This document shows, piece by piece, positions 1,173-29,954 of a DNA stretch of 64,000 nt. The notes beneath the pieces are model-generated. The model saw only the letters and a program-made list of their open reading frames with translations, did no database searches and was not told the origin of the DNA. The translations under genes and the position numbers were made by a program. Each line of letters opens with the position of its first letter. Within the stretch, counting starts at the first letter, position 1. The stretch is from the NCBI RefSeq assembly GCF_040938485.1, contig NW_027271416.1:186001-250000 (forward strand), in the 5' to 3' direction. The stretch is from Diadema antillarum. Its lineage: Eukaryota.

Positions 1173-4028
1173 TATTTGACACCAGGGGGAAAGTAACTCG
1201 TGCAACAAAAGAAAGAGAACAAGGAAGAGGACGAGGACATCGTCATAAAAATTTACGGATACAAACATCCCGAGGTGTTAATACTCTCATTTATCTCTGC
1301 CCATTACAAGCTTATTCACGCGCTAGTATAACTGTGTCTATATAGTTTACAAAGTATTACCAATTTTAACTCTGCTGATGTTTCTAAAATTTTGTTGTCA
1401 TGTTAACAACTTTCGGGGACTCAAATTTGTTGAAATGCATCTTAAGGAAGGGAGTATGTCTAACATCATTATTTCATGAACCAATTAGCTGCACATGACA
1501 ACAAACGCTCTTTTAGTAAATTTGTCACTTATCTGCATACACTATAAAAGAGTTCAAAAATAACCATGAATAGCATGCACCTCTCTCTTGTGTTTCAGTC
1601 GTTTAAGTTATGAGGAGGACGTGATTGAGCAAGCCACTGTTAATACAGTAAAAAGGGAAGTTCTAAGGAGGTCTGACCTGTACCAAGTTCTACTCATGTC
1701 TCCCAATTCCTCAAACGTCGATCGTTCTACACTAATTTCGGATAAGTCCTAAGGCGATGGTCTATATTCAATTCAATTCAATTTTTATTTCATTTTTCGA
1801 CAAGAAAATATAGACATCAATTTTTTGGGAGATAATGATAAATACATTTTAAACAAAAGCAGCAAAATCGTAACAGAAATGTTGACCTAACAAACAAGGG
1901 AGAATCAATCGTATAAGCTTATTTGATAAACATGCGACAAATTTTGTAACACTTAGTGTCACGCACGAGTAACATGCATGTGTGTATATCGTTTCCTATG
2001 CTTACCAAGTATGCCGCACTTCCCGGTTCAAAATTGCTGATTTATGTCTGGTTCCGAAGTCCCGCTCGGAAGTATGGGATCAAAACCTGTTGGTCTGTTC
2101 AGCGAAGGCGAACACATTCACATATATATTGAATGTGGTCTTACTTTTTAGACTAAGACCCAAACAAAATATGAAAAGTTAGTTTTTGGACAGAGAGGTG
2201 CACTATGTTCGCACTGACAAAATGGCAGCGATTAAAGCAGCTTTCAGAACAATGTTTGCATATTCTTCGTGACCTTACCCTCTGAACGCTTCTATTAATA
2301 GAACTGATAAGTGGGTTTTCCCCCATATCTCAAACATTATGTGTTTATCTGAAAATCACAGCGCATTGTGCCATAATTATACGCTTGAATGAATAAACAG
2401 CGCATAATGAAATTTCGCTTTGTATAGTGAGCTATTCATCTGACATTGATGAACATTTTCTGAAAAGAGAAATATATCAACAAAAGTCGTCTTTTTAAGG
2501 GATCACTTCAACGAGTATCTTAGTAAAATGAGACAATTGGTCTGTTGGTTATTCAAAAATGTCCGTCTTTTATCCTTTTGGTACATAATCATCAAATTTT
2601 CTTTTTTTTTAAATTCCTGAGACTTATCAAACCACGAGAATTTAAAGAGTCTAGATTGTGTGCTGATGTATTCATCATTTGATGTTCTGATACATATCAT
2701 GTAGAAAACTAAACTTTATTACTGATATATCTGGAAGCATATGATTATTGCATTCCACTTGATGCTGCATGGTGTTAACGAGGATACCGCAACCTTCTGA
2801 AGTTGGGGAGGGATGGTTTAGGATTAGGGTTTGGTGGTGGTCCTGGGTAAATTCACACAAGAAGTAAACGTTTATTTTGAGACAAGTATGCATGTCACAG
2901 TCTGCAAAAGACTTTGATAAAGTTATAGGAGGGGGAGAATATCATGTTTGATCAACAACCTCCGAAACATTCATATCGAACTGTAAAACATAGCAGGATT
3001 TTTTTTTCTATTTGTTTGTTTGTTTTACTTTTAACTTAATTTAACTCCGGTTAGTTTTGTGAGACATTCTGCCGAAGATATATTTTTAATTAATCTGAAA
3101 CGATGCCCTTTATCAACAACCATGAACAGGGAAAATAAAAAAAAAACAATAATTATTTTCAATCTGTTGGATTATAGAGTATAGCCATATTATTTAGAAT
3201 ACATGTCCTTCATGTTTTCGCATCACTAAACTGGAAACACATTTGTCATCCCTGCCATGTCATAAGCCAAAACTTCGAATTTAATGAACTGATCCTTACC
3301 AGTCATATACTTTTGTTGTTGTTGTTCTTTGGTAGCGGGTTTTTAGTTAACACCGTAGCTGACAGTTAATGCCAACGGAAACATTGGGCTGAATCATTAA
3401 TCTTTATTGGGAGTTCTAAGCATCAAAAGCAAATGTGATTATGGTACTATATAGTAACGAGTCTGACTCGGTGGAGGATTAAAACATGGTTAGTACTGAT
3501 ACAGAATCTCCCTATGATACATCATATTAAATATTTGTCAAGAGTGAAGTGAAACTCCAGTCTGTGTCAAAGTTGACGCTGTTTTTTTGGTTGTTTGTTT
3601 GTCGTTTGTTTTGTTTTTGTTTCTTGCATGTCAGCTAAAGAAACCCGGAATTGGATAAGCTGATGAAACCCGGAAGTGTGCTCCCCCCCCCCCCCCCCCC
3701 CACACACACACACTTTTGAAAACGTGGCGCCGGCGATGAAGTGTCATCAAAATCAGAATCCCTTCCACCACCACCCTAAAAAAGAAAATAAATAGATAAA
3801 AAGTAGAATGAAACAAATTTCGAAGTTTAACATATTAAGCTCATGAAATGATGATAGCAATCAGACTGATATCGGACAACTTATATTATCATGAGGTGAT
3901 AATATTAGACACATAAACCTCCACTGACTTTCCTTTATTTCATTTATTGATTTAGCATTGTTATAGAAATGAATGGTCTCATCTCCTCCAACTAAACTTG
4001 CACCTACTTCTTACAAGTACATGTACAT

Positions 4029-4031
4029 ATG

Positions 4032-4106
<75 letters not shown>
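4029..4106. repeat. Compound (TA)n(TG)n microsatellite; other (CA)n/(TA)n/(GA)n tracts at about 5638-5675, 9996-10033, 17779-17812, 33092-33156, 36390-36425 and 40058-40101
   Basis: Direct inspection; they explain the YIYI/CVCV/HTHT ORFs. Confidence 0.9.
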
Positions 4107-4108
<2 letters not shown>

Positions 4109-5412
4109 TCATTTGCTGTGTTATATAGTCAAATTATTGACAAGAAAAATAAAATCTATATTATTTTCATGCACAAACTTAAAGATTTGTATTGTCATGG
4201 GAACATCACCGCGACTAATTTGCATAAAACGTGTCTTTGTGGCCTATCTCTCTTTTGACAAGGAAAAAACAAAAACAACAGGAGAATATTTTAAATGCCA
4301 TAACTTATCAATGCTTGTCTGGTTTTGCAGGAATATTTTTGAGATTTCCGGAATTTACACTTTTTATTGAAAAAAAAAAAGTGAACTCATCCATTCGAGA
4401 AGTGTTTTTTTTTTGAGAGAGAGAGAGAGAATAAGACCCTTCTGCTATAAGCTTATGTCAAACAAATATCTTCTTCACTCCTCGTTTGCTGTAGATTTGT
4501 TAAAGGCAAGAAATAAAAAAAAAATACCTGTCATGATATTATGAGATGTGTGTAACACTGTGCTACGTGTCACTGTGGGTTTGTGGTGTACTTATGTGTT
4601 AGTCACGCAGAAGTTTTTGCTTTTGCTTTTAACCTGATCAATTTCTACCATTATTCTCTATTATATCCCTCATGTAAAGCTTCTTGCCATAGGATTGTAC
4701 AGAGCACGAACATGGTGTAGTTTTACTAGCTAGCTACGAGCAGCTGGATGCGGTGCAATTGGTTACTAGCCAGCGGGATATAGTACTTTTGGGAATCCAC
4801 GATCTGCACCCATCGTGATCGTGCGATCGATATCGACATTTCTCACTCAAGAATGTACGCAGTGCGCGTAGTAGCGATACTTTTGAGCGACAGTCCTGTG
4901 CGTGGCTTGTAGCTAGCGCTAGCAGCGCTTTGGAATTGCGCGACGGCATAATTACAGAAATCTGTGGTGCGATGGCGTGTGTGTGTAACGTTATTTGCAA
5001 TTAGTGTGATCAATGCATTCAGCTCAATTGACAAAGTGACTGGTTCAAGTAACGGAGGAATGATCGCAGGAGGACACCATATCAGGTACGAATTAGGAAT
5101 AAACTAAAACCGATTTTGAAGATGATCTGGGTAACGAAGCTGCTTTTGGCCTACTTCTAACGTAGTCCTGGACCTCCTCGATCTTTCGGAGTTTTGCACG
5201 CTGTGTAGTAGTGTAGCTCGTGTGTAGGAATCAACAACAGCGCAGCGGTGTCGTTCGCTACGCGCTGCACGCACTGCTGCTGCACAGCTACGGCCTAACG
5301 GTAGATTTATCGTTCAAGAAACCTGCACATTTTTCCAAAAGGGAACCGTCATTACTCTAGTAAAATGCTCGAGAGGGATATAAAACAAATATCGACTGCT
5401 TTCTTTCGGGCC

Positions 5413-5523
5413 ATGGTAAAACTATTTGACCTCGGTGATTTCTCAACAGTGCCATGTCCCTCGACTTCGTCTCGGGACATAAGCACTGTTGAGAAATCAC
5501 CTCGGTGCAAATAGTTTTACCAT
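5413..5523. repeat. Long imperfect hairpin (about 50-bp arms), probably a MITE or transposon end
   Basis: ATGGTAAAACTATTTG..GGTGATTTCTCAACAGTGC (5413-5452) pairs with GCACTGTTGAGAAATCACC..CAAATAGTTTTACCAT (5483-5523) around a CCCTCGACTTCGTCTCGGG core. Confidence 0.7.
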
Positions 5524-5634
5524 CTCCCTCTGCAGCAGTCGATATTTGTATACTGTTTCGTCATTACGCCATTTCCACCTCATTCTCAATTTCACTCAAG
5601 CACAAACACATCTACGAGTTTTAACACATAAATG

Positions 5635-5678
<44 letters not shown>

Positions 5679-6028
5679 CATCACGTACACAAAGAAACAC
5701 AGTGTAACTTATCATGCACGCACACATCCATGAATACAAATAAAACCATGTAATACTCTCAAAATGCCAACACAATGAAACAGGCTGAAATGAAGAAGAT
5801 CTACATGTCAAAAGACAATGTTTATTAACAAACATCATGATAAACAACAATGTTGCTGAATTTAAGTCAGAATCATCGCGAATGTCTCAGATAACAAAAC
5901 AGAGTTCTGGAGCCGGAAGCATGCTGAAGGGTTTGTTTCCAGCAAAGAGTGAAATAAATATCTCAACATGTGATACTACACATCACATCTCAGTCACTCC
6001 TATCAAAAGTGAGGCATCATCACAGCGT

Positions 6029-7267
6029 TCAGTGTGGAACGACGAAGACATAAGGATGATCTAACAAGTAGAATGGCGACAGGCTGTGGTGGAGACTCAC
6101 TTCACGGTACGGCGATGAATACGACGAAGTCGGTCGGCTGCTTCGGGAGAGAAAGTCTACAGACATCAAGGGATTGGTGGCGCCCTGCTGCTTTCGATGA
6201 GATGTCGTCTGCGGTAAATTGATGACGTCACGCTCGTCGCTGATACGGAAAGTCGACCAGGAATCCGATGGTCGGCTGCTACGAGACAGGAAATCGACTG
6301 ACATCGCTGAGTCGTTGATGGCGAACTTCTTGGGTGGCGGTGTGTTCTGATGGTCGATGACGTCGCATTCCGTTGATCGCTTACGCTTTCCTGTGGATGA
6401 AGACTCCGGTCCCTTGATCTGGTTGTTGGTGTCTAGTCGAGTAGAGAGGGAGTTGAGTGAAGCTCGACGAAGCCGCGAACGGCGATTCTGAAACCAGACC
6501 TGAAGATGAAGAAAAGAAAGACATGACTTTACCCTATGTGCTTCATGCAGAAACAGAACTTGTAATGGACATAAATCCTAAAATAAAGCTGATACACAAT
6601 GTATTTGAGGATATTGTAGATAGTAGTTGGAGGGTATGGCAAATTGTTTTTATGCAACAACTGATTAACCACAAAAAAGTCACACACTTTGAGAAAATAA
6701 TGAATTTTTAGCTCCAGGCAATGATTTTCTGGCCGGTACTGAGAATGTTTGAGTTCTATATTTACGTAGGTAACATCATGATATTCATTCTAAATAAAGA
6801 AATCCAATGTGTAAACTGTATTTAACAACAGTCATATCATTTTGTCGTTCAAAGTCATTTAAACAATTTATGCCATAAAATATAGACTTGATGATATATG
6901 TATACATCTCTATCATGATCATAAATGTTTAGATATCCATGAGATCAAATTAAATCATTTACAGGATTCTTCTTCCGTGGTTGATTGCATTTATTCATTC
7001 ATACAAATGTAGGTGAAGAATATCTTTAGCATTACAATCGCTTTACACAGCCCTGATTTTACATACTTGTATTCTGTCTTCATCGAGGCCGAGTGAGGCA
7101 GCCAGTTTCTCTCTCGAAATGATGTCGGGATATCGGTCGATGTCGAATTCAGCCTTCAGCCTCTCGAGCTGCCATCCGGTGAACACGGTCGGACGTCGAC
7201 GACGGAGGCCTTTGGTAGGAACGGACGTCGAGACTTGAGAGAGAATCGAGAGCGGTGAATCAGCCAT
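6029..7267 (-). CDS. pmar1: PRD-class Q50 homeobox repressor, pmar1/micro1 family, copy A (2 exons, 223 aa)
   Basis: Exon 1 is 7267-7067 (MADSPL...RRRRPTVFTGWQLERLKAEFDIDRYPDIISREKLAASLGLDEDRIQ, donor GTATGT). Exon 2 is 6499-6029 (acceptor cttcag; VWFQNRRSRLRRAS...KRKRSTECDV...MSVDFLSRSSR x2...VVPH*). The phase-0 intron between homeodomain codons 46 and 47 is the PRD-class hallmark. RRRRPTVFT, VWFQNRRSRLRR and the twice-repeated MSVDFL eh1-like motif match the echinoid Pmar1/Micro1 family as I know it. Confidence 0.9.
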
Positions 7268-7364
7268 GCTGAATTGGATTGGTTTTGTACAGATGCTGGT
7301 TTGTAGGATAAACCTCAGAGGTGCGACTTAACTTCAAGAAAATCTGAATGAGGTGTGGTGATAG

Positions 7365-7625
7365 AATATATCAAAGTAGCTGGTAGCCTTGCAGTGATTA
7401 AGTGGGTTATGAATTGGAGAAGCCACGCACCACTTTCACAAGCCCTTAACAAGCAAAGTGGTTTGATTGGTCTGATAAACCGACCAATAGGCGTGACAGG
7501 ATTAGCAATTGAGGTAAAGTTGTAGTTTCATGAATGCCCACAGACTTCCACTATTCAAAGGGTAGTGTGACTGTCCTAATCTATGTCGCAAATACAAGAG
7601 GGCTATCACTTTTCCTTTGTTCATT
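7365..7625 (-). promoter_or_regulatory. Proximal promoter of pmar1 copy A with TCF-, CCAAT- and Otx-type motifs
   Basis: Plus-strand ATCAAAG at 7370-7376 (TCF consensus) next to a TATA-like AT stretch; GATTGG 7465-7470 and CCAAT 7484-7488; GGATTA 7499-7504 (Otx/K50 site); CTTTGTT 7615-7621. These are motif matches only. Confidence 0.5.
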
Positions 7626-8194
7626 AGCGGTCTAATTGTCGGTCCGCTGCCGACAAACCAAACAATACCCTTGTAGCAACTTCCCAAGATCGACAAGGAA
7701 CAAAAGGAGTAGAGGAACAATAGACTATTTCTTGCGCTCGTCGTACAGTCGGTTATTACAGAACATGGTTCTATTTAGAGATCTTTGAAAACTCTGAAAC
7801 TCATCTCTGAAAATTGTCTTGATGAAGAGCAAAACCAAATTTTTGCCCATGCTCAAGATGACATTATTAAATGCCGTCAAAATGAAACCAAAAAGACAAA
7901 GTGAAATTGTTATTTATAAATACAACTTTACAAACAGTCACCTTTGGAAAAAAGGGAAAATGAATAGATTCGAAGTTTAAATAATTTATATGGGGTACTA
8001 ACGTCATCGACTCTTTCGCCTTTAAAAAAAGAAATACGAGAAACATAAGTCACATTAAACTCCAGTCCGACTCATTTATTGTTCTTGACTTTTTTGTTTG
8101 TTTTTCTTTATCTTGGTGGCCCAACATTTTTTTTTTCTGTGGTCCCGGGCCACCTGATCACCGCTTATGTCGATCACTGTGTAATAATAATACG

Positions 8195-8397
8195 CAAGTA
8201 TGGACATCTATTGGAGGTTGAATTTGATGCTTACTTTAACAATAATCTCAAGTTGCAATTTGCTGAACATAGCCAGGCGTCGATGTCGCTGGTAGGAACG
8301 GACTTTGAAGTGTGATCGAGAACACTAATCTCCGTGTAACTATCGATAGCATACATAGAGTTTAGTGATCGAGAAGAGAGTGTAATAAATCAGCCAT
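8195..8397 (-). pseudogene. Degenerate third pmar1-like copy (exon 1 remnant)
   Basis: Starts caacATGGCTGAT like copy B (copy A has cagcATGGCTGAT) and reads MADLLHSLLDH*. An insertion of about 53 bp bounded by the direct repeat GTGATCGAGAA (8312-8322 and 8365-8375) introduces the stop. Beyond it is TSKSVPT (copy A: VSTSVPT), then after a frameshift HRRLAMFSKLQLEII (homeodomain start, cf. RRRPTVFTGWQLERL) and NRCP (cf. DRYP). No second exon was found. Confidence 0.7.
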
Positions 8398-10222
8398 GTT
8401 GGAAAGTGGATACGACCTTAATTTAGTATAAGGCGTGTAGGGTGAGAACGTTTGACGTGTGCAGCTACGTGAAATATATATATATTTTCGATTCACCGTA
8501 TGACCAGTTTTCGTTGGGAAGTTCCAATTTCCATTCAGAGAAAGTCTCACAGGTCAAATCAAAGGACCAATGGGGTTGAATAATAACGGCACAGACTGGG
8601 ACGTAGTTCGTATCTTAAGTGATCTGTCACTCGAGTTCTTTCACTGGCTGATGTAGTCCCATTCTTCAGGTATAGACTGAAAGAGAACTGTGCGGCAATT
8701 GAACCGACAAAGTTATACTGAGACACTATGGCTTTCTTTCAGAGATTACATTAATCTCTATGCTTTCTTCTCACTCGAAACGCGCGCCCCGGTTGTGATG
8801 ATCCTATCATAATACCTAATCACGTGTTTGCTTTTGTTCATGACAGGATGCAAGAAATTAAGGAGCAGATCGTAAAGAATAAAGATCGTCCTTTGAACAA
8901 CCCACACAGAAGAAAGGTCTATCCTATCAAAGAGTTGAGATCAAAGTTTTGCCGAAGATTATTTTGGCGTAAAGTCTCCCTGTCAATCATGGCCATAATA
9001 TGTCAATAGTGTTGTCTTTGCATCAGTTAAGTTGAATTGTTCTGATAGTGCTATAGACACAGGTTACGTTCAATTACTGTACAGAGAGGATGGGCCATCA
9101 TCTCCTATACAATTGATGGTCATTCAATCCTCTAGGTCCTAGTTATCGGTGTGGGTATGTAAGCATACCATATATTCATTTGGTTGTGTACGTATCATAT
9201 CAACGTGTCATGTATGGAAGCTTGTATGTATAAACCTGCTTTTTGAAAAGAGAGAGAATATAAATGGGAGAAAGTGCAAACTTTTATATCTGATAAATGG
9301 AAGGGAAAGGTTCATGATTATGTAAATATACATGCAGATAAAAAGTGAAGAAAACATAGCCTTATCATAAAAGTAATAAGACGTGTTTTACCCAGAGCAC
9401 ACACTGATGAGGTCCTCACGCACGAATGAATTAACAAACCAGCAACCCTTGAAAATAAGAAGGCAAAATGACAACTTCACTTCGTAATACTGTGATTCAA
9501 GAAATAAAATGCAAATCTTACAGCAACTCTTTTAAACCCTTCGACACGTATTATGCGTGTGGTAGGAATTCAACACCGTTATCAAATGTCTGTATCGCCT
9601 CTTTACTGGAATATTTGATTGTTTGTAATGATGTCATAACGACTTGATATCTGTTCAGGTTTTGTAAGAAAGCGTCGAGTCATTCTGATATAGCCAAGGG
9701 AATGCTTCCGTCTAAAGGACATGAGCTTACTGTATTACTATTACTTTTGTGCATAAGATGTATGCCGTTGTTCATGTACCTATCATAATGGCATATTTTT
9801 ATACAGACATTCTGCATAGCTTGGCCTGTGAATATTTAGAAAGAATATGTGTGTCCATTTCTTTGTAGAGATTGCCGTTTGTTCGAAAGTAGTGATAGAG
9901 GTCTATAACAGGACAAACTGTTGTATCTCACATTACCTTTCCAAGCATCAAAAGACTCAACACTTCGTTTGTTTTCTTTGATCTCTCCCGTCTTCCCTCT
10001 CTCTCTCTCTCTCTCTCTCTCACTCACTCTCTCTAGAACTCTAGTTCATGTTGTCAATGCCAACAGTTTATTTTGGCACAATATTTTTTTATACCAATAA
10101 TTAATTTCATTTTATCAAAATAAGCTCGTGTTTTGATAGCATGAGCTTGAGTTCTGTTCTATGTTTCAATATTATTGCAACAACACGTGGACTCCTTTCT
10201 TTCTTTCTCTCTCTCTCTCTTT

Positions 10223-10257
<35 letters not shown>

Positions 10258-10881
10258 TGTGTGTGATAAAACATCTGTGTTTATGTTTTTATTTTTTCAT
10301 GGTATGGTCCTTTTGCATAGTATGTGTAAGACTCATTTAAAAAAAACATAAAAACACTAAAAACAGAAACAAAATACACCAAATGCACAGGCACTCNNNN
10401 NNNNNNNNNNNNNNNNNNNNNNNNNNNNNNNNNNNNNNNNNNNNNNNNNNNNNNNNNNNNNNNNNNNNNNNNNNNNNNNNNNNNNNNNNNNNNNNNNNNN
10501 NNNNNNNNNNNNNNNNNNNNNNNNNNNNNNNNNAATTCATCCAGCCACACAACGGTCATACACTTCAACTTTAAAAAAATATACTCCTGAATGACAAATT
10601 TGTTCACAGAAAATGATTTGGTAATAAACCGGTGTATTTATTTACAATCATAATTCAGAATTGTGTTCAAAGCTGAAAGTCATAGTGGGTTACTATGATA
10701 CACAAAAAAAAAAACCATTGCTCCACGTCACAGAACAGGTTTCACTAGGACTCGTCACGACGAATGTCCAGGATCAAGATGGCATGATAATATATGATAC
10801 TGCAATCGTTATGTAGAATGACGATGGGCTGTGGTAATAGAGACTACCGATTGCTTTCAAAGTTCGGCAGCATCACAGTGT

Positions 10882-11969
10882 TCAGTAAGGTACGACGAAG
10901 ACATAAGGATAGTCAAACATGTAGAATGGCGACGGGTTGTGGTAGAAACTCCCTTCACGGTAAGGCGATGGATACGAAGAAGTCGGTCGGCTGCTTCGGG
11001 AGAGGAAGTCTACAGACATCAAGGGATTGGTGGCGCCCTGCTGCCTTCGATGAGATGTCGTCTGCTGCAAACTCATGATGTCACGCTTCTCGTTGATGCG
11101 GAGAGTCGACCAGGAATCCAGTGATCGGCTGCTACGAGACAGGAAATCGACTGACATCGGTGAGTCGTCGATGGCGAACTTCTTGGGCTGCGGTGTGCTC
11201 TCCTGGTCGATGACGTCAGTTGTTGCAAAGTGTTTCCTCTTACGTAGGCAGTGGGTCTCACTTTCCGCAACACCGAGACGGTTGTCGATGGAAGGTGAGA
11301 AGGACTTGAGGAAGGATCGACGATGCCGTGAGCGACGGTTCTGAAACCAGACCTAGAAAGAAAATGAATAAAATATGACTATTAAGAAACAAACAAAACA
11401 ACAGTCTATCGTTCTATCCTAATACAAAGCCTGATCAATTCGGCCTCTTGAGACACTAGTTGCACAGCTTCGATTACAGTTTGTTTGTATAGAAACTGAA
11501 TCAATATTCATTCGGTAATAAGCAGGAAGAATATTGTTGACAATAAGAGGTTACTTTATTTGCTACTATAATTTCATACTTATTATGCTATTATACTGCT
11601 TCAAATAATTAAATTGGATATTTCATAGTAACAAACTCAGACTATAAGCAATGTTGATATATAGTGTCATTTAAACGCCAATTGAAATGATTTTAATTAG
11701 TTGATAACTTAAACATTGGTTGAGTACATCTTTTCATACCAGATTCTATGCCGTATATCTAATATGACAATGAAACCTACGTGTATTCTGTCTTCATTCA
11801 GACCCAGTGTAGCTGCCAGTTTCTTCCTGGAAACGATGTCGGGATACTGGTCGATGTCGAACTCGGCCTTCAGTCTCTCGAGTTGCCATTCGGTGAACCT
11901 AGTCTTACGTCGAGGACGAGGTCGCTTGGAAGGACCAGACATCGGGACGTGAAGCAACGAATCAGCCAT
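10882..11969 (-). CDS. pmar1: PRD-class Q50 homeobox repressor, pmar1/micro1 family, copy B (2 exons, 219 aa)
   Basis: Exon 1 is 11969-11781 (MADSLL...RPRRKTRFTEWQLERLKAEFDIDQYPDIVSRKKLAATLGLNEDRIH, donor GTAGGT). Exon 2 is 11352-10882 (acceptor ttctag; VWFQNRRSRHRRSF...MSVDFLSRSSR x2...VVPY*). Exon 2 has the same length (471 nt) as in copy A. Homeodomain identity to copy A is 47/60 by hand count. Confidence 0.9.
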
Positions 11970-12154
11970 GTTGGATAGCGATTTTAGCCTGGGAGATGTT
12001 TGAGGGATCGGTGACGGGTAATCGTGTTCGGATGTTCAGTCAGGTAAGAAGACAATTCGCTTGTGACTAGCTTCTATCCCAGTTGATTCCCGTCAGTAGT
12101 TTTCATTTCATGGAAAGCTACAATTCATTTCTGTGCTGCATGTATGGTATGGGA

Positions 12155-23791: not shown

Positions 23792-24139
23792 ATATTGACC
23801 GATTCGGGTTCGTTGAGGGCAGCAGACATTTCATGGCACTGTGCGCAGCCATAGTGGGTGTATCAGCCGACCCCCCCCCCCCCTGCTCTCCCCCACCCCG
23901 GGCAACATGTTTATCGCGCACTTGTAACAAAGGTTCGCGCACTAAGCAAGCATTCACGCACTAAGCAAGCATTCGCGCATTCAGTACGAGACGCCCATTG
24001 GCTAAAGCAGTTTTTCATTCTGCGCGCGTGCTAATGTAGGGAGAGGGGTGGGGAATGGGAAGGGGGGTCAGCTGAGACACCCACTATGGCTGCGCCCATG
24101 CCAAAAATACACATAGCGCATCACAGAATCGGTCAATAT
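23792..24139. mobile_element. MITE-like element with nested inverted repeats
   Basis: The outer inverted repeat is ATATTGACCGATTC/GAATCGGTCAATAT. The inner one is GCGCAGCCATAGTGGGTG..CCCCCC / GGGGGG..CACCCACTATGGCTGCGC (about 23843-24095). Confidence 0.6.
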
Positions 24140-25068
24140 GCTTCATAGAAACTGTGCAATAACTATTATTATTATTAGTCCACTACTTGAGTGCCAAAGC
24201 GGCTCAATTTTGAAGTAATTTGCATTTACACCTCTCTGCATTGCACTGAACCTACGTAAAACTAGTGCATCTAAGGGGTATTTATACAAGAATTCTCAGA
24301 TACACCAGCTTCTTTTGCAGGAAAAGATTAGCAGAACAAAGTTAAGAGTATCTGAAGTGCCAAATGTTTCTGAACTAACAGGAGCAATACAAAACGCAGG
24401 ATCTGCATGTGACATGCAAATGAGGGAAAATAAGTGTTGAAATACACTGTAGGTAATGAATCGACTGACCATCAATTTTTGGATACACTTGCTTTTTGGG
24501 ATCACTTCTAGTGATCATAACTATGAAACATCTGATCCCTGTAACTACTATCCCCCTTGTTATAATGGACAATGAAAACAAATATTCCAGTCATAATAAA
24601 CATGCCAATGAGTCATGTAGAAGCAGTACTACTGGTAATACCCAAGGGAAAAAAAATTAAATTATCAAAAAAATCTCGAAAACTGAAATAGACGGGCATA
24701 CATTATGGATTAGAAACATGAATTACAAGTTTGCTTCCTCCATGGAATCTTAACATGTCACACTGGAGTTTTTTGTTCTTAGTCACTGACTGACCACTCA
24801 TTTTACCCACAGTGTGCGATTGATGAGAAAGAACAGTTGAGTACCAGTTTCCTCGAAGCAACCAGAACACTCACAAAGATGTCCAAAGCTTGGAGGTTCT
24901 AATCACAGAGGCCATTCTCACTCAAAGAGCTGTCGAGAGCTCCACACCTGACATGATGCAAAACGTCCAGCCTCTCTCTTCACGTGATCCTCCACGGCTG
25001 CCTGGCACCTGTCCCGAAAGGTCCTTGCCACACCACAGGCTGCTACAGTGGACATTCAAGGGCCGAGG

Positions 25069-28000
25069 TCAGTGAAAGTTGAAGTAGTGGTCAATGGCAG
25101 CTGAGAATGCAGCAAAGCCTGCACAACCAACAACTCCTGCCTTAAGCCCCGCTGAAAAAAAAAGAGAAGAAAACAAAGATGCAAGGAAGGGAAGAAAAAA
25201 AAAAGAAGCAATACGAGACAAAATTTTTACTGGGTTATTGTGTGCTAATTCAAATGATCAGTTGCAAGAAAAGATCATTTTCATGAATCAGTAAGTCTTT
25301 GCTAAAACACAACATTCTGTAATATCCATTAAAACCATTCATCATACATGAATATATTTTGAGTCACATTGGCATGAAGAATTTCCTGAGTAAACTCATC
25401 AAGAAAAAAAAAATCCATCCTCTTAACAAATATTTATGGCTTAATAATTGAGAGTTGTTTTTACTTTAGATATAATCATTAAGTAGCTTACCTCTGTATC
25501 CAATGAGACCTCCAGTGATACATCCAGCCATAGGACTATTCTTCCAATCACTCTGTCCACGATACTATCAAATGAGTAGACACAAGAGACAGACAGACAT
25601 GAAATGAAGTGAGTGAAAGACGCTGTGAACTTATCAAATTTCACTGCTTCAAAGGAATGTATGTGCGGAATGTATGTGATCAAGCACAATACAAGTTACA
25701 CAAACTTATTTCATCGAGTAAAGTATAATTCTTCTCACAAAATATTTCAAAATCAGCTTAAAGGGATAGTTATAGTTTTGGTTTAAATGGGGTTTCAGGT
25801 TTCCAACTGTCTTTGTGAGATAATGAGAAACCTCATATCTTCGGCTGAGAATGGTAAGGGCGTGAAGTTGCCACTTAAGCCAGTGTTCAAGGCACCTTAA
25901 CGCCCTTCTCATTCTCAGCCAACAATATGAAATATTATAGGGCATACAATTCTAGGAGGAATTAAAAAGTTTATTCAATAAAAATTGGTCTTGAAATGGC
26001 TGTTACTTTGCTTTTTCATATCTTAGCCATTTTAAAACTAATTTTCATCAAATAAACTCGGAATTCCTCATAGAATTGTATGCTCTTTAATATTTCATGA
26101 GTGGTTTCTAATTATCTCACAAAAACTTAAAATCTGAATCTCCATCTCAACCAAAACTATATATCTCTTTAATCATAGGCTCCAAGTCTAACATAGAGCA
26201 TGAAAGCATCACTATAATGAACAAGTAGGTTATCACAAAATATACTGATATCTGAAAAGAGATAAATGTTAGCTTATCAACAAGTTAGTTTTCATCCCGC
26301 AATTCATCACAGTCATCAAGTTAAGTACTACACTGCCTAATGCTGAGAGCACTGTTGCTTATACAAGCCTTCACTTCTTCATTTTTTGCTGCTAATATTT
26401 GCTAATGCAGCTACACTGTCATACTCACTGATTCCACTATGCACTCTGTGCCAGCAAACATAGCACCGATCAGGGCAAAGTTCTTGGCGTGGAAGAAACA
26501 CTGCTTGCCCATATCCTTGATGACATCCCGTGCCCTCTGCTTTGCTGCCAGCTCGGGGTCGATGGGATTGACGCTGGCTGCAAACAGTCCAATGGCCCCA
26601 CCAAGTCCAAAGCCTGTGATATAATAAACACAAACATATTTTCACTTTTGAAAGATGCAGAATTTTCCAATTTTCCAAAGAGCATACCTTTCTCATGACA
26701 ATGATAAATTCTTTATAATCTAAACACAGGTTGTTTCTTGGGTAACAGACTTACCAAGTGCAAATGGTGGGTACGTCACAACTGAAAGTTTTGTCTTCTA
26801 CAATGCACTATGCATACAGCCCCCTTTAGCAAATAATCATTGGGTAAACAAAGCTAGATTTCTACTAGTATTCTGAGTGTACTTGCTGATTTTCATGAGG
26901 GGGACTCCTGCTCATGAGGCCCTCAGGGCAAGATGTTCATGAGGCCCCCTGTTCACCTCTCATCATTCTCACATCTGACATATAATTTTGTTGCTAGTTC
27001 CCACAGTGATTTTTCGTATCACACATGTCCACTCTCCATGATGAAAACAATAAAAATCTGTCTGTGCTTTTTTGACAAAAATGGAGTTTTAATCAAGCGA
27101 TGTGCAGCGATCCACTGAAACATGGGTGCTACCAGGTATGTTCAATGCAGGGCTGCTGCACCTATCGGCCTGATCTGACTCAAAATTTTCAGCTGTGCAC
27201 AAAAAAGCATTTGCGTTTCTACGTATGTAAATGTTCAGCTTTACCCTAGTAACAGTAGCCGGTATAGCAAAATAGCTGGCGGTCTAATTTTGGACGGTGT
27301 TCTGGGCCCCATTTCATAAAAACTTGATATGATAGCAACTCTTGCAGGAATGGCAATTGTCATGACAACGACAAGAATCCAGCTTCCTGATTGGCTGTTG
27401 CTATCGGAAGTTGCCATTCCAGCAAGAGTTGCCATCCCAACATCTTTTATGAAATGGGGCCCTAGCCAAATTATGGGCAGCTTGACCTCTGTATATCATC
27501 TAGAAAAGCACTCAGAGAGTGCAGACCTCCGCTAAGTCAGCAACTCATTTCCATAGTTGGCATTTTAACATGCTGCAATTTCCCAATATAGAAGCCCTTG
27601 TTTATGTCATAAGCAGAGCACCCGCTTTAGATTTAGTGCATATGTAATCCTCCAAGATGCACAGCCAGAACTCCCAAATTCATTGACCTTTATTGAATAT
27701 CATATGCCAAAAGATCAAAAATTTCCTTTGAAAATCTATAAAAATTCCCTGATCACTACCAAAATCTAATCATCTGTTCCTCGTGCCATTATCAACTTTT
27801 CCTGCTTCATTTCTAGTTTCATTCAAATCCATTCAAAACTTTTTGAGTTATTTCACAAACAGACAAACCGATTGGCGATGATCACTAATTTTAACCTCCT
27901 CCTTCCTTCTGCTGGCCTTGGCGGAGGTAATTATCATCAATAATTTTTTATTGTCGTTTATTATCGACTTCTGACCGTGAGAAAGGAAAGCTCGGACACC

Positions 28001-28425
28001 AAGATACAAGTGGACATTGAAATAGGCGGCGCCAGCGAGCATCCATTGGTGACTGGGCATTATTGGCACTGCGATGATGAGCAGCAACGACCATGACGAC
28101 CCGATGGATGGCTTCATCTTCGCTTCGCCCACGCCATGTCCACGGGCGCAGGCCACGGCCACGTTCGCCTTCGGTACTCACCTAGCACACCGCTGATGAC
28201 TGTCTTGAAGGTGCAGCTATCCATGACTCGTTCTACCGTTTGTTCTTCGGGGGTTTTCGGAGGAAAAGGAATTCCATACTGTCGCATTTCTGAGTTGTAT
28301 CTTTTCTTGTTTTCCCCAACTAATGCCTCCATAACTTGGAGCAGTCCAAGTTCGCTGACTTGACCTTCATTTTGTGTCGGTAACATCGACGAGGTTTCCC
28401 CATGTGATTCACTGGAAGCGGCCAT
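25069..28425 (-). CDS. TIMM22: Mitochondrial import inner membrane translocase subunit Tim22 (4 exons, 194 aa)
   Basis: Exons 28425-28182, 26613-26429, 25564-25492 and 25151-25069 with GT-AG junctions and phases 1/0/1. Protein: MAASSES...KTPEEQTVERVMDSCTFKTVISGVLG-GFGLGGAIGLFAAS...[68 protein letters not shown]. These are Tim17/22/23-family motifs specific to Tim22. Confidence 0.96.
25762..26168. mobile_element. TTAA-flanked non-autonomous DNA transposon (same family as 14667-15071) carrying a 78-bp hairpin insertion
   Basis: TTAA|AGGGATAGTTATAGTTTTGGTT ... AACCAAAACTATATATCTCT|TTAA. The insert is GGCTGAGAATG..CATTCTCAGCC at 25843-25920. Confidence 0.75.
27305..27461. mobile_element. MITE family A, copy 2
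   Basis: GGCCCCATTTCATAAAA/TTTTATGAAATGGGGCC TIR; near-identical to 62594-62751. Confidence 0.85.
27766..27931 (-). mobile_element. Fragment of a Helentron/DINE-like non-autonomous element
   Basis: Reverse complement of the 5' part of 48706-49103 (TACCTCCGCCAAGG...GGAGG; CATCTGTTCC..GTGCCATTATC). Confidence 0.6.
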
Positions 28426-29954
28426 CTTGCTTTCCTTTTGTACTACTGCCCTCAACGTTTAATTCCAAAAGCTTAAATCCGTCCGTAGGATTGTTAGTTT
28501 TTATGACATTATTTTTTTTTTTCATTCATTCTGCTGAATCACCCATAGTGAGTGCAATTACGTATCCAAGAAGTGCAGTAGGCCTAATAACTTTTGAAAA
28601 AAGTGTAGAGTTGACCTGATATTTTTTTTCATATTTCGTTTCCCGAATCCGTGTGCGAATTTGAATCAAATGTATCATATCTTCAAAAGTAATGACATTA
28701 ATTTTTTAAATCAAAGAGGTTATGATAACAAATAGGCCTTGAGTATTGTACAAAAATGTAATGAATTTCATATTGTTTTGTATTGCACTCAAGAGTGAAT
28801 GTCTGAGGGTAGCAAAGCAAAGTGATCATTGCAATCTATTATCATATACAATGTACATTATATAATAACACCGTAAATATATAATATAGGCCTAATTACA
28901 ATATATAATATACAGTCTATATTCTTTCAATACAAACGCTGTCCCCATGCTAAGGAGCTAATAGTCGCTGCAAATAAAATCTCAGTGCAATCTTCGGATT
29001 TTTAAACAAGCCAACGTAGGGTCGTAAACATTATTTTAACACATTTCAAAATAAATGCAGATTATCAGTTCTGCAAACATGGATGTGAGATTCAGAACAA
29101 CTGAGTAGTCGACCAGTGTAGATTAATTGTCAGTGCTTGTGGCAGTGTCTGTTAATAAAGCTCTATCAGTAGAATTATGTTTGAGTCTGTTCAAATTTGT
29201 GTCGTGGTTGTTGTAATTTTTACGACTGTCTTATAGCTGTTTTGCACGTAAAGAAGTATAATATCTCACAGTGGTAATCGATTCTTACTAACAAATCAAC
29301 GAATTTGACCCAAGGCCTATCATGGCATGGATAAAGAGAATTAAGTTGATCTTGTGTTATGGAGAATATAGAGAATTCTGGCGAGGGACGATAAAAAAAA
29401 AGGTTGATACTATACATGTATTGGTGATGTGAGGTTTCGATCGCGGCTAGACACAAGTGTGATTATTATTATTTGTTGTTGTTGTTGTTGTTGTTGTTGC
29501 TGTTTCACACATTCTGTTGTCGCTCGTGTCTTTTGTTCGCAGCGGCAATACTAGAGCTCTTTCCCCCACTATTCAATTCATTCAATTCAATTCATTTATT
29601 TTTCATTCTTCTTTTGTTCCAGCAGAGCACAACACAGAATGAATCAGGAATTATATCACAAACGTATACATTCAATTTTGCAAAGGATAAATGATACAAA
29701 TAAGGATATATGCATGCATACTTGCCAAAAAATACAAAGTTATGTTTCAGCTGAGAAAATAAAAAGAATTGAGAGGTCCACTATAAGGAAGCTAGTATAT
29801 TGTGAACCATTCAAAGGAAAATCTTATGAAATGCTTACTTGCATATACTTAGCACAAATGTAATTTAAGACAAGACGGAACAAAAACACGAGACACACAA
29901 CAACAGCATGACACGACTTGACAGAATGGATTGAAAAAATGGAAGAAAAGAATT

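Follow-up and report, generated by a model that had tools for sequence, protein, structure and literature searches.

The question raised by this locus is whether a pair of homeobox genes in the early-branching urchin Diadema antillarum belongs to the pmar1/micro1/hbox12 family, and what kind of members they would be. Pmar1, a fast-evolving repressor gene, heads the developmental network that has been studied best in animals, and it starts the specification of skeleton cells in sea-urchin embryos. The DNA analyzed, referred to here as the window, is a stretch of 64,000 nucleotides from contig NW_027271416.1 (C528:186001-250000), and C528:1-250000 was stitched together for the survey of the surrounding array. 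Unless another contig is named, positions are those of the window. An earlier note, made from the letters of the window alone, had described two intact same-strand paralogues of pmar1/micro1 type and a decayed third copy at 6029-11969. Our best explanation of this segment, which we hold to be very probably correct, is that it is a unit of two genes, copy B followed by copy A, together with an old exon-1 relic, and that it belongs to the D. antillarum pmar1/micro1/hbox12 cluster.

Two complete two-exon homeobox genes lie on the minus strand of 6029-11969, copy A encoding 223 amino acids and copy B 219, with about 66% identity between the proteins (coordinates are collected in Table 1). In both genes an intron with GT..AG ends splits the homeobox between RIQ and VWFQNRR, and the mispredicted proteins of L. 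pictus and Heliocidaris have insertions precisely at this intron point, homeodomain 46/47. Both proteins match the Pfam Homeodomain model (E ~1e-19 to 1e-20). The homeodomain is paired-like and has WFQNRR with Q50; the arm in copy B is slightly different, RPRRKTRF. C-terminal to the homeodomain, the eh1-like motif MSVDFLSRSSR occurs twice in each protein and is aligned with the (F/M)SVDFLSRSSR of camarodont urchins. The peptides quoted in the earlier note, RRRRPTVFT, WQLERLKAEFDIDRYPD, VWFQNRRSRLRR and MSVDFL, were all found, MSVDFL twice per protein. Copy A is 100% identical to a D. antillarum "uncharacterized protein" at NCBI (P0001), and exon 2 of copy B is identical to the NCBI protein P0016. 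Searches with tblastn and blastn over the whole window found no third full copy, and the gene models together with the exon-1 relic bear out the picture of two intact paralogues and one decayed copy.

Around twenty paralogues from D. antillarum and D. setosum match copy A at 60-90% identity. The nearest proteins outside Diadema lie below that range and are Micro1/Pmar1 of Scaphechinus, Strongylocentrotus, Hemicentrotus, Lytechinus and Heliocidaris, with 41-50% identity in the best local alignment. These matches have 45-50% identity over 94-100% of the length, with the exception of a 210-amino-acid record from Heliocidaris (41% over 79%). The best of them is Scaphechinus Micro1/Pmar1 (48%, E 5e-48); the others include the S. 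purpuratus "paired class homeodomain repressor" and its paralogues, H. pulcherrimus Micro1 and Lytechinus proteins. The alignment is collinear from end to end, and takes in the MAD N-terminus, the RRRRPTVFT arm, Y25-P26, WFQNRR with Q50, RKRK, TPPPKK and the HPYVF tail. In the aligned columns the first eh1-like motif reads (M/F)SVDFLSRSSR and the second GAT(S/N)PLMSVDFLSRSSR.

A maximum likelihood tree of 43 rows and 231 columns was computed with IQ-TREE under LG+C20 with the posterior mean site frequency (PMSF) approximation. All twenty Diadema proteins form one clade (97/97), which is sister to Scaphechinus plus the camarodonts (95/84); the joint clade has support of 96/92. A cidaroid protein that was also found by the profile search, BBK09440.1 of Prionocidaris baculosa, annotated as Micro1/Pmar1-related, attaches just outside the joint euechinoid clade, in agreement with the species tree. 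The assignment of both genes to the pmar1/micro1 type is thus upheld by the full-length collinearity with its E of 5e-48 and by the 96/92 node. On these sequence comparisons A and B are shown to be lineage-specific co-orthologues of euechinoid pmar1. The guess that the window comes from a distant lineage, cidaroid or diadematoid, was right for its second part, as a D. antillarum protein matches copy A in every residue.

The earlier note had proposed a homeodomain phylogeny as a check, and in the tree the genes group with Pmar1 and not with the Phb type, for which a candidate reference was used. This reference is the L. pictus protein P0194 (XP_054752376, 336 amino acids), which has one MSIEFLSKSSR motif and whose sole database name is 'ALX1-like'. 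It falls among the outgroups, outside Pmar1. An orthologue of P0194 is found in Diadema as an allelic pair, C105:888390-888683 and C73:2013712-2014005, single-copy and 68% identical over exon 1. It lies outside the pmar1 cluster, and is probably the Diadema Phb-type gene. No protein named Phb was returned by word-based protein searches or by an exhaustive profile search; multi-homeodomain gene models and mammalian DUX-like proteins made up most of the matches of the latter.

The homeodomain had also been called distinct from that of the familiar euechinoid Pmar1, by comparison with a Strongylocentrotus string for helices 1-2. That string, LQLQILETAFNDNQYPD, is really present in S. purpuratus Pmar1 proteins, and the differences between it and the Diadema string WQLERLKAEFDIDRYPD are real; the Diadema form, however, is largely the ancestral state. 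W11, E19-F20 and R/Q24 are common to Diadema, the sand dollar and the cidaroid, and because the sand dollar and the cidaroid share the Diadema residues it is the camarodont string that is derived. Copy A has 39-42 of 60 homeodomain residues in common with camarodont Pmar1, 40/60 with Scaphechinus and 37/60 with the cidaroid, and copy B has 34-36/60 in common with camarodont Pmar1. The base-contacting positions (the arm arginines, V47, Q50, N51 and S54) are unchanged.

Substitution patterns differ between the homeodomain and the remainder of the proteins. Overall, the ratio of nonsynonymous to synonymous divergence (dN/dS) is ~0.2 in the homeodomain and 0.6-0.8 elsewhere. For A against B, dS is 0.40 (0.63 within the homeodomain), with dN/dS of 0.20 in the homeodomain and 0.72 in the rest. 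For B against the D. setosum protein P0015 (dS 0.137) the two values are 0.22 and 0.59. The comparison of A with D. setosum P0002 (dS 0.054) has no synonymous changes in the homeodomain, where the ratio is therefore not computable; it is 0.61 in the rest and 0.70 for the coding sequence as a whole. Purifying selection acts on the homeodomain. The two eh1-like motifs of copy A are identical in 12/12 residues while 8/36 nucleotides differ between them, all synonymously, and copy B has the same pattern for 11/12 residues. Since the motif copies differ only synonymously, both motifs are maintained by selection.

Published hallmarks of the family provide a second line of comparison. For Pmar1 these are two eh1 motifs that are needed for repression, Q50, and near-identical tandem copies (PMC4709884). 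For Hbox12/pmar1, PMC5370098 adds two exons with one intron, head-to-tail bigenic units, members on the opposite strand, copy-number variation between individuals and species-specific clades. All of these are present in Diadema, with the qualification that near-identity of the tandem copies is not general; the hallmark of a tandem multicopy cluster with copy-number variation is among those found. Camarodont Pmar1/Micro1 (S. purpuratus, H. pulcherrimus, Lytechinus) resembles the Diadema proteins in its length of ~220-240 amino acids, MAD start, RRRRPTVFT arm, Q50, helix 3 VWFQNRRSRLRR, RKRK, TPPPKK, two (F/M)SVDFLSRSSR motifs and HPYVF tail, and the genes are alike in having two exons and standing in a tandem multicopy cluster. 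Apart from helices 1-2, they differ in that the first motif starts with M in Diadema and with F in camarodonts, and in that the Diadema paralogues (A versus B 66%, C type ~60%) are far more diverged than the near-identical camarodont copies. The Hbox12 family of Paracentrotus lividus (PMC5370098) resembles that of Diadema in its many copies, bigenic head-to-tail units, opposite-strand members, copy-number variation, lineage-specific clades and subfamily-specific promoters. Unlike it, Diadema has subfamilies that are strongly diverged in coding sequence and common to two species, and many exon-1-only relics are interspersed among the genes.

The cidaroid Pmar1 (BBK09440.1) is like the Diadema proteins in its paired-like Q50 homeodomain with W11, EEF and RYPD, and in having RKS..TPPxKK followed by an MSIDFLARSSR motif. 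It differs in having one eh1-like motif instead of two, another C-terminus, and the 37/60 homeodomain identities given above. Cidaroid Pmar1 has been published (Yamazaki 2020, as cited in PMC8505446 and PMC13701902), so that the presence of pmar1 outside camarodonts, described in the earlier note as debated, is no longer so (BBK09440.1; PMC8505446). Phb/Pplx genes of other echinoderms belong to the same broad PRD-like group and are expressed early and vegetally in both sea stars and brittle stars. Tandem duplication is found in Amphiura, as in Diadema. Amphiura Pplx has H50 and no eh1 motifs, unlike A and B (PMC4709884).

The presence of pmar1 in Diadema is expected, as the family is known from cidaroids to camarodonts, and the proteins already exist, unnamed, as NCBI predictions. 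A full-text literature search found no paper describing Diadema pmar1; both words occur together only in two reviews of 2026, one of which used the D. setosum genome for a homologue survey. Two points deserve specialist attention, the number of eh1-like motifs, which is taken up below, and the division of the Diadema paralogues into three deeply diverged subtypes that are conserved across species. These subfamilies, A (14 sequences), B (3) and C (3), each have D. antillarum and D. setosum members, and therefore predate the split of the two species.

When pmar1-like exons were located by a six-frame genome search, they were found at C528 ~28-198 kb and on contig C85 at ~116-311 kb. The array on C528 spans ~170 kb and contains roughly ten genes with both exons and at least seven isolated exon-1 relics, most of them with stops (Table 1). 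Window 6029-11969 is thus the distal head-to-tail B-then-A unit at the cluster edge, only the end of a far larger cluster. The B-to-A unit, C528:187170-197587, recurs at C528:125420-134971, offset by 62.7 kb, with 94.5-97.4% nucleotide identity, and an older copy with ~85% identity is found at C528 91.5-98.4 kb. In the recurrent unit, the duplicate of copy B (C528:134270-137469) has an exon 2 that is 98.7% identical, and an exon 1 of another sequence type that lies ~2.5 kb away, compared with 0.43 kb in copy B. The exon 1 being of another type and far off, the unit duplication breaks inside the intron of B.

Contig C85 is the other haplotype contig. The flank containing a Tim17 gene (24001-28473) matches C85:100411-105058 at 84-93% in mirrored orientation, and the C85 allele of copy B (P0017) is 98% identical. 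The arrays on C528 and C85 differ in spacing, copy order and copy number, the layout of C85 being that given by hit coordinates only. An A-type gene on C85, P0003 (C85:146521-147775), has ~4 kb downstream the same young interspersed element as copy A has (described below), and stands 30 kb from the B allele, whereas copy A stands 3.6 kb from B. P0003 is 88% identical to A in amino acids (dS 0.054), and the D. setosum orthologue of A is closer, at 90-92%. Structural polymorphism, gene conversion or misassembly may each account for the placement and divergence of P0003. We also considered whether the A/B unit could be an assembly artefact. This was ruled out by its collinearity with D. setosum and by near-identical B-type copies at three places (C528 197 kb, C528 134 kb and C85 116 kb); as three places exceed two alleles, at least part of the duplication is real.

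Window 1340-12055 has a collinear counterpart in D. setosum (L050, OZ188189.1, ~5.73 Mb), with, in order, the B orthologue, the exon-1 relic and the A orthologue P0002. The B orthologue (L050:86-1386), for which no gene is annotated, is interrupted by an in-frame stop in exon 2 (SRHR*SS), and the B-to-A spacer contains ~4.6 kb of extra DNA relative to D. antillarum. D. setosum has a second, paralogous B-A unit (P0015 and P0004) ~88 kb away. The decayed exon-1 relic between A and B has a local alignment score of 27 against 10.7 +/- 1.7 for shuffled sequences, and its homology stops after QLE of helix 1. No exon 2 for it was found in the window by permissive search and local alignment. The same relic is present at the orthologous place in D. 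setosum (L050 8861-9041). The proposal of birth-and-death evolution is supported by the relic, the pseudogenized B orthologue in D. setosum and the many exon-1 relics along the array; in the cluster, whole units are duplicated and copies decay. At this locus of a developmental regulator, both birth-and-death evolution by units and structural differences between haplotypes are clearly seen.

Regulatory sequences were compared between the two species. From 9235 to 6625, a segment made up of exon 1 of A, the 2 kb preceding it and the greater part of the intron, the window is 93.5% identical to D. setosum L050; the block formed by exon 2 and the 3' flank is lower, at 87.6%. Four A-type promoters of the two species have in common three 7-mers of TCF/LEF type (-109, -293, -522) and one TAATCC of Otx type (-237). 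No similarity was detectable between the promoters of A and B. The A promoter would be compatible with TCF/Otx input to the A type, although the pattern of sites is not evidence for such input.

By analogy with the family, the homeodomain would bind TAAT-type sites and the eh1-like motifs would recruit Groucho/TLE, making the proteins short-lived transcriptional repressors. At least one Diadema subtype would be switched on briefly in vegetal micromeres at cleavage by maternal beta-catenin/TCF together with Otx, as expected of a family whose micromere expression is zygotic, transient and dependent on beta-catenin/TCF from the fourth cleavage. Pmar1 would then repress a broadly expressed repressor, HesC in camarodonts, and so release the skeletogenic and mesoderm programme. 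Among the subtypes, the promoter sites hint at A as the better candidate for a micromere role.

Several observations weigh against the placement and role proposed here. The only Phb reference in the tree is a candidate by resemblance and not by its database name. The count of TCF/Otx sites upstream of A, three TCF sites per kb, is barely above chance (P ~0.03), and upstream of B, which has one TCF 7-mer, there is no enrichment above chance. Among public sequencing runs no RNA run containing the stretch was found; the reads from four runs on 5500-8500 cover the intron and the spacer with no spliced joint, and are thus DNA-like and uninformative on expression. The stop in the B orthologue implies that D. 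setosum can do without the B gene of this unit. Cidaroid Pmar1 is reported to act not via HesC but through another, unknown repressor (PMC8505446). Finally, most members of the Paracentrotus family are not micromere-specific (PMC5370098), and for this reason sequence does not reveal which role A or B has.

This last point leads to the alternative that survives best. A or B, or both, could be pmar1-family genes that have become sub-functionalized, with animal, dorsal or broad expression like Paracentrotus hbox12-a or the widely expressed members, the micromere gate gene being another subtype; we regard this as a possibility of some weight, though unlikely to be the correct account. The P. lividus family has three expression classes with class-specific promoters (PMC5370098), and the existence of three old subfamilies in Diadema, each common to two species, would fit such a division, as would the dissimilar promoters of A and B and the single TCF 7-mer upstream of B. 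On the other hand, both A and B retain in intact form the coding features that repression requires, and the three TCF 7-mers and the Otx site are kept in four A-type copies across the two species. We think it quite improbable that A and B are duplicates, intact in appearance only, that are redundant, silent or in decay. Such decay is seen in the array, with its seven or more exon-1 relics with stops, the 92-kb copy whose exon 2 is interrupted by a stop, the copy at 47 kb without an ATG and the interrupted B orthologue of D. setosum, and constraint outside the homeodomain is relaxed (dN/dS 0.6-0.8); however, the homeodomain has been held at a dN/dS of ~0.2 since the A/B split, over a dS of 0.40 (0.63 within the homeodomain), neither the two haplotype copies of B in D. 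antillarum nor the A orthologue in D. setosum has a broken reading frame, and both eh1-like motifs have been kept with synonymous change only. It is highly unlikely that A and B belong to a Phb/Pplx-type or other PRD-class family and are Pmar1-like in the homeodomain alone, for although short homeodomains resolve poorly and earlier trees did not always separate Pmar1, Phb1 and Pplx (PMC4709884), the similarity to Pmar1 is full-length, the tree places the genes inside euechinoid Pmar1 and P0194 with the outgroups, Diadema has a separate orthologue of this Phb-like L. pictus protein on C105/C73, and A and B have Q50 and two eh1-like motifs where Amphiura Pplx has H50 and no eh1 motifs (PMC4709884).

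With A and B placed in the euechinoid pmar1 family, the number of eh1-like motifs may bear on the origin of the gate. Two motifs are found in all sampled euechinoids, including Diadema, and one in the single cidaroid Pmar1 and in the Phb-like protein; in Scaphechinus the second motif is altered to MSGDFL. According to a published model, HesC came under Pmar1 control after cidaroids and euechinoids had split and before the crown of the well-studied urchins, and Diadema branches inside this interval of the proposed HesC capture. We suggest, as a speculation that is more doubtful than likely, that the second eh1-like motif may have arisen by internal duplication in the euechinoid stem, within that same interval, and that Diadema may keep three ancient, differently regulated subtypes of which the TCF/Otx-bearing A type would be the gate gene. 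If this were true, Diadema would be the taxon in which to date and dissect the origin of the pmar1-hesC link. The gene models, the A, B and C subtypes, the conserved promoter blocks and the Phb-like locus are reagents with which it can be asked in Diadema embryos whether any copy is micromere-specific, whether hesC is cleared and whether the two-motif repressor architecture is relevant.

Table 1. Coordinates of the two genes, associated features and other members of the array (window positions, except where C528 is given)
Feature	Position	Strand	Remarks
Copy A exon 1	7067..7267	-	Residues 1-67; ATG at 7267; GTATGT donor after 7067
Copy A exon 1, homeodomain positions 1-46	7204-7067	-	
Copy A intron	6500..7066	-	567 nt, phase 0, GTATGT...CTTCAG; between homeodomain residues 46/47
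Copy A exon 2	6029..6499	-	Residues 68-223 and stop; homeodomain helix 3 (6499-6458), RKRK, TPPPKK, two eh1-like motifs, HPYVF tail
Copy A eh1-like motif 1	6269..6304	-	MSVDFLSRSSRP; columns conserved from Diadema to camarodonts
Copy A eh1-like motif 2	6131..6166	-	MSVDFLSRSSRP; columns invariant in the alignment
Copy A upstream block	7268..9235	-	Candidate cis-regulatory region; conserved between Diadema species
Decayed exon-1 relic of third copy	~8246-8406	-	Start context CCAACATGGCTGATT kept; early stop, frameshifts
Assembly gap (N)	10397-10533	.	In B-to-A spacer, 349 nt 3' of B stop
26-nt echo of C-terminal coding tail	10811-10836	-	Just 3' of copy B stop; 88% identical to 10919-10944; weak, short match
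Copy B exon 2	10882..11352	-	Residues 64-219 and stop; eh1-like motifs at 11157-11122 and 11019-10984
Copy B intron	11353..11780	-	428 nt, phase 0, GTAGGT...TTCTAG; homeodomain 46/47, as in A
Copy B exon 1	11781..11969	-	Residues 1-63; homeodomain positions 1-46 at 11918-11781
Three C/A-type genes	C528 ~28-41 kb		Some on opposite strand
A-type copy	C528 47 kb		Exon 1 without ATG
Copy with stop in exon 2	C528 92 kb		Annotated product cut to 192 amino acids
B-type copy	C528 97 kb		
Second A/B pair	C528 129/134 kb		
A and B of the window	C528 192/197 kb		

The assembly gap is intergenic and outside both coding sequences, and thus no reading frame depends on it. Its flanks are found at the orthologous locus of D. 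setosum in the same order and orientation, 74 bp apart as judged from coordinates only.

Linkage of the cluster to SELENOM, TIMM22, TPMT and BLTP2 had been suggested as a source of synteny anchors. This was borne out in part. The Pfam Tim17 model matches an exon at 26426-26635 on the minus strand (57 bits), with an allele at C85:102441-102650, and this Tim17-family exon is consistent with TIMM22. The other side of the cluster is a TRIM/B-box flank. For the Pfam TPMT and Sep15_SelM models the six-frame genome search gave no match in the window, a result that does not exclude the genes since short exons are easily missed.

Several other elements were noted near the genes. Pfam scans of ten long open reading frames of the window gave nothing useful. 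The frame that runs from the window edge at 1-636 on the plus strand (212 amino acids) has no Pfam match; in our own reading, it resembles the C-terminal part of a reverse transcriptase of a retrotransposon without long terminal repeats (non-LTR). At 815-1190 there is an interspersed element of ~285 bp, very young and high-copy, with a 37-nt piece repeated ~65 bp upstream. A first look gave 839 candidates genome-wide, and 40/40 scored copies were 98-100% identical. A copy that is 98.9% identical lies in the intron of the D. setosum orthologue of copy A, an identity that exceeds that of the surrounding orthologous DNA. The element looks like a recently active short interspersed nuclear element (SINE)- or miniature inverted-repeat transposable element (MITE)-like element in Diadema. 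A second interspersed repeat, of ~380 bp, is found at 29573-29951 and is matched by dozens of contigs at 82-90% identity.

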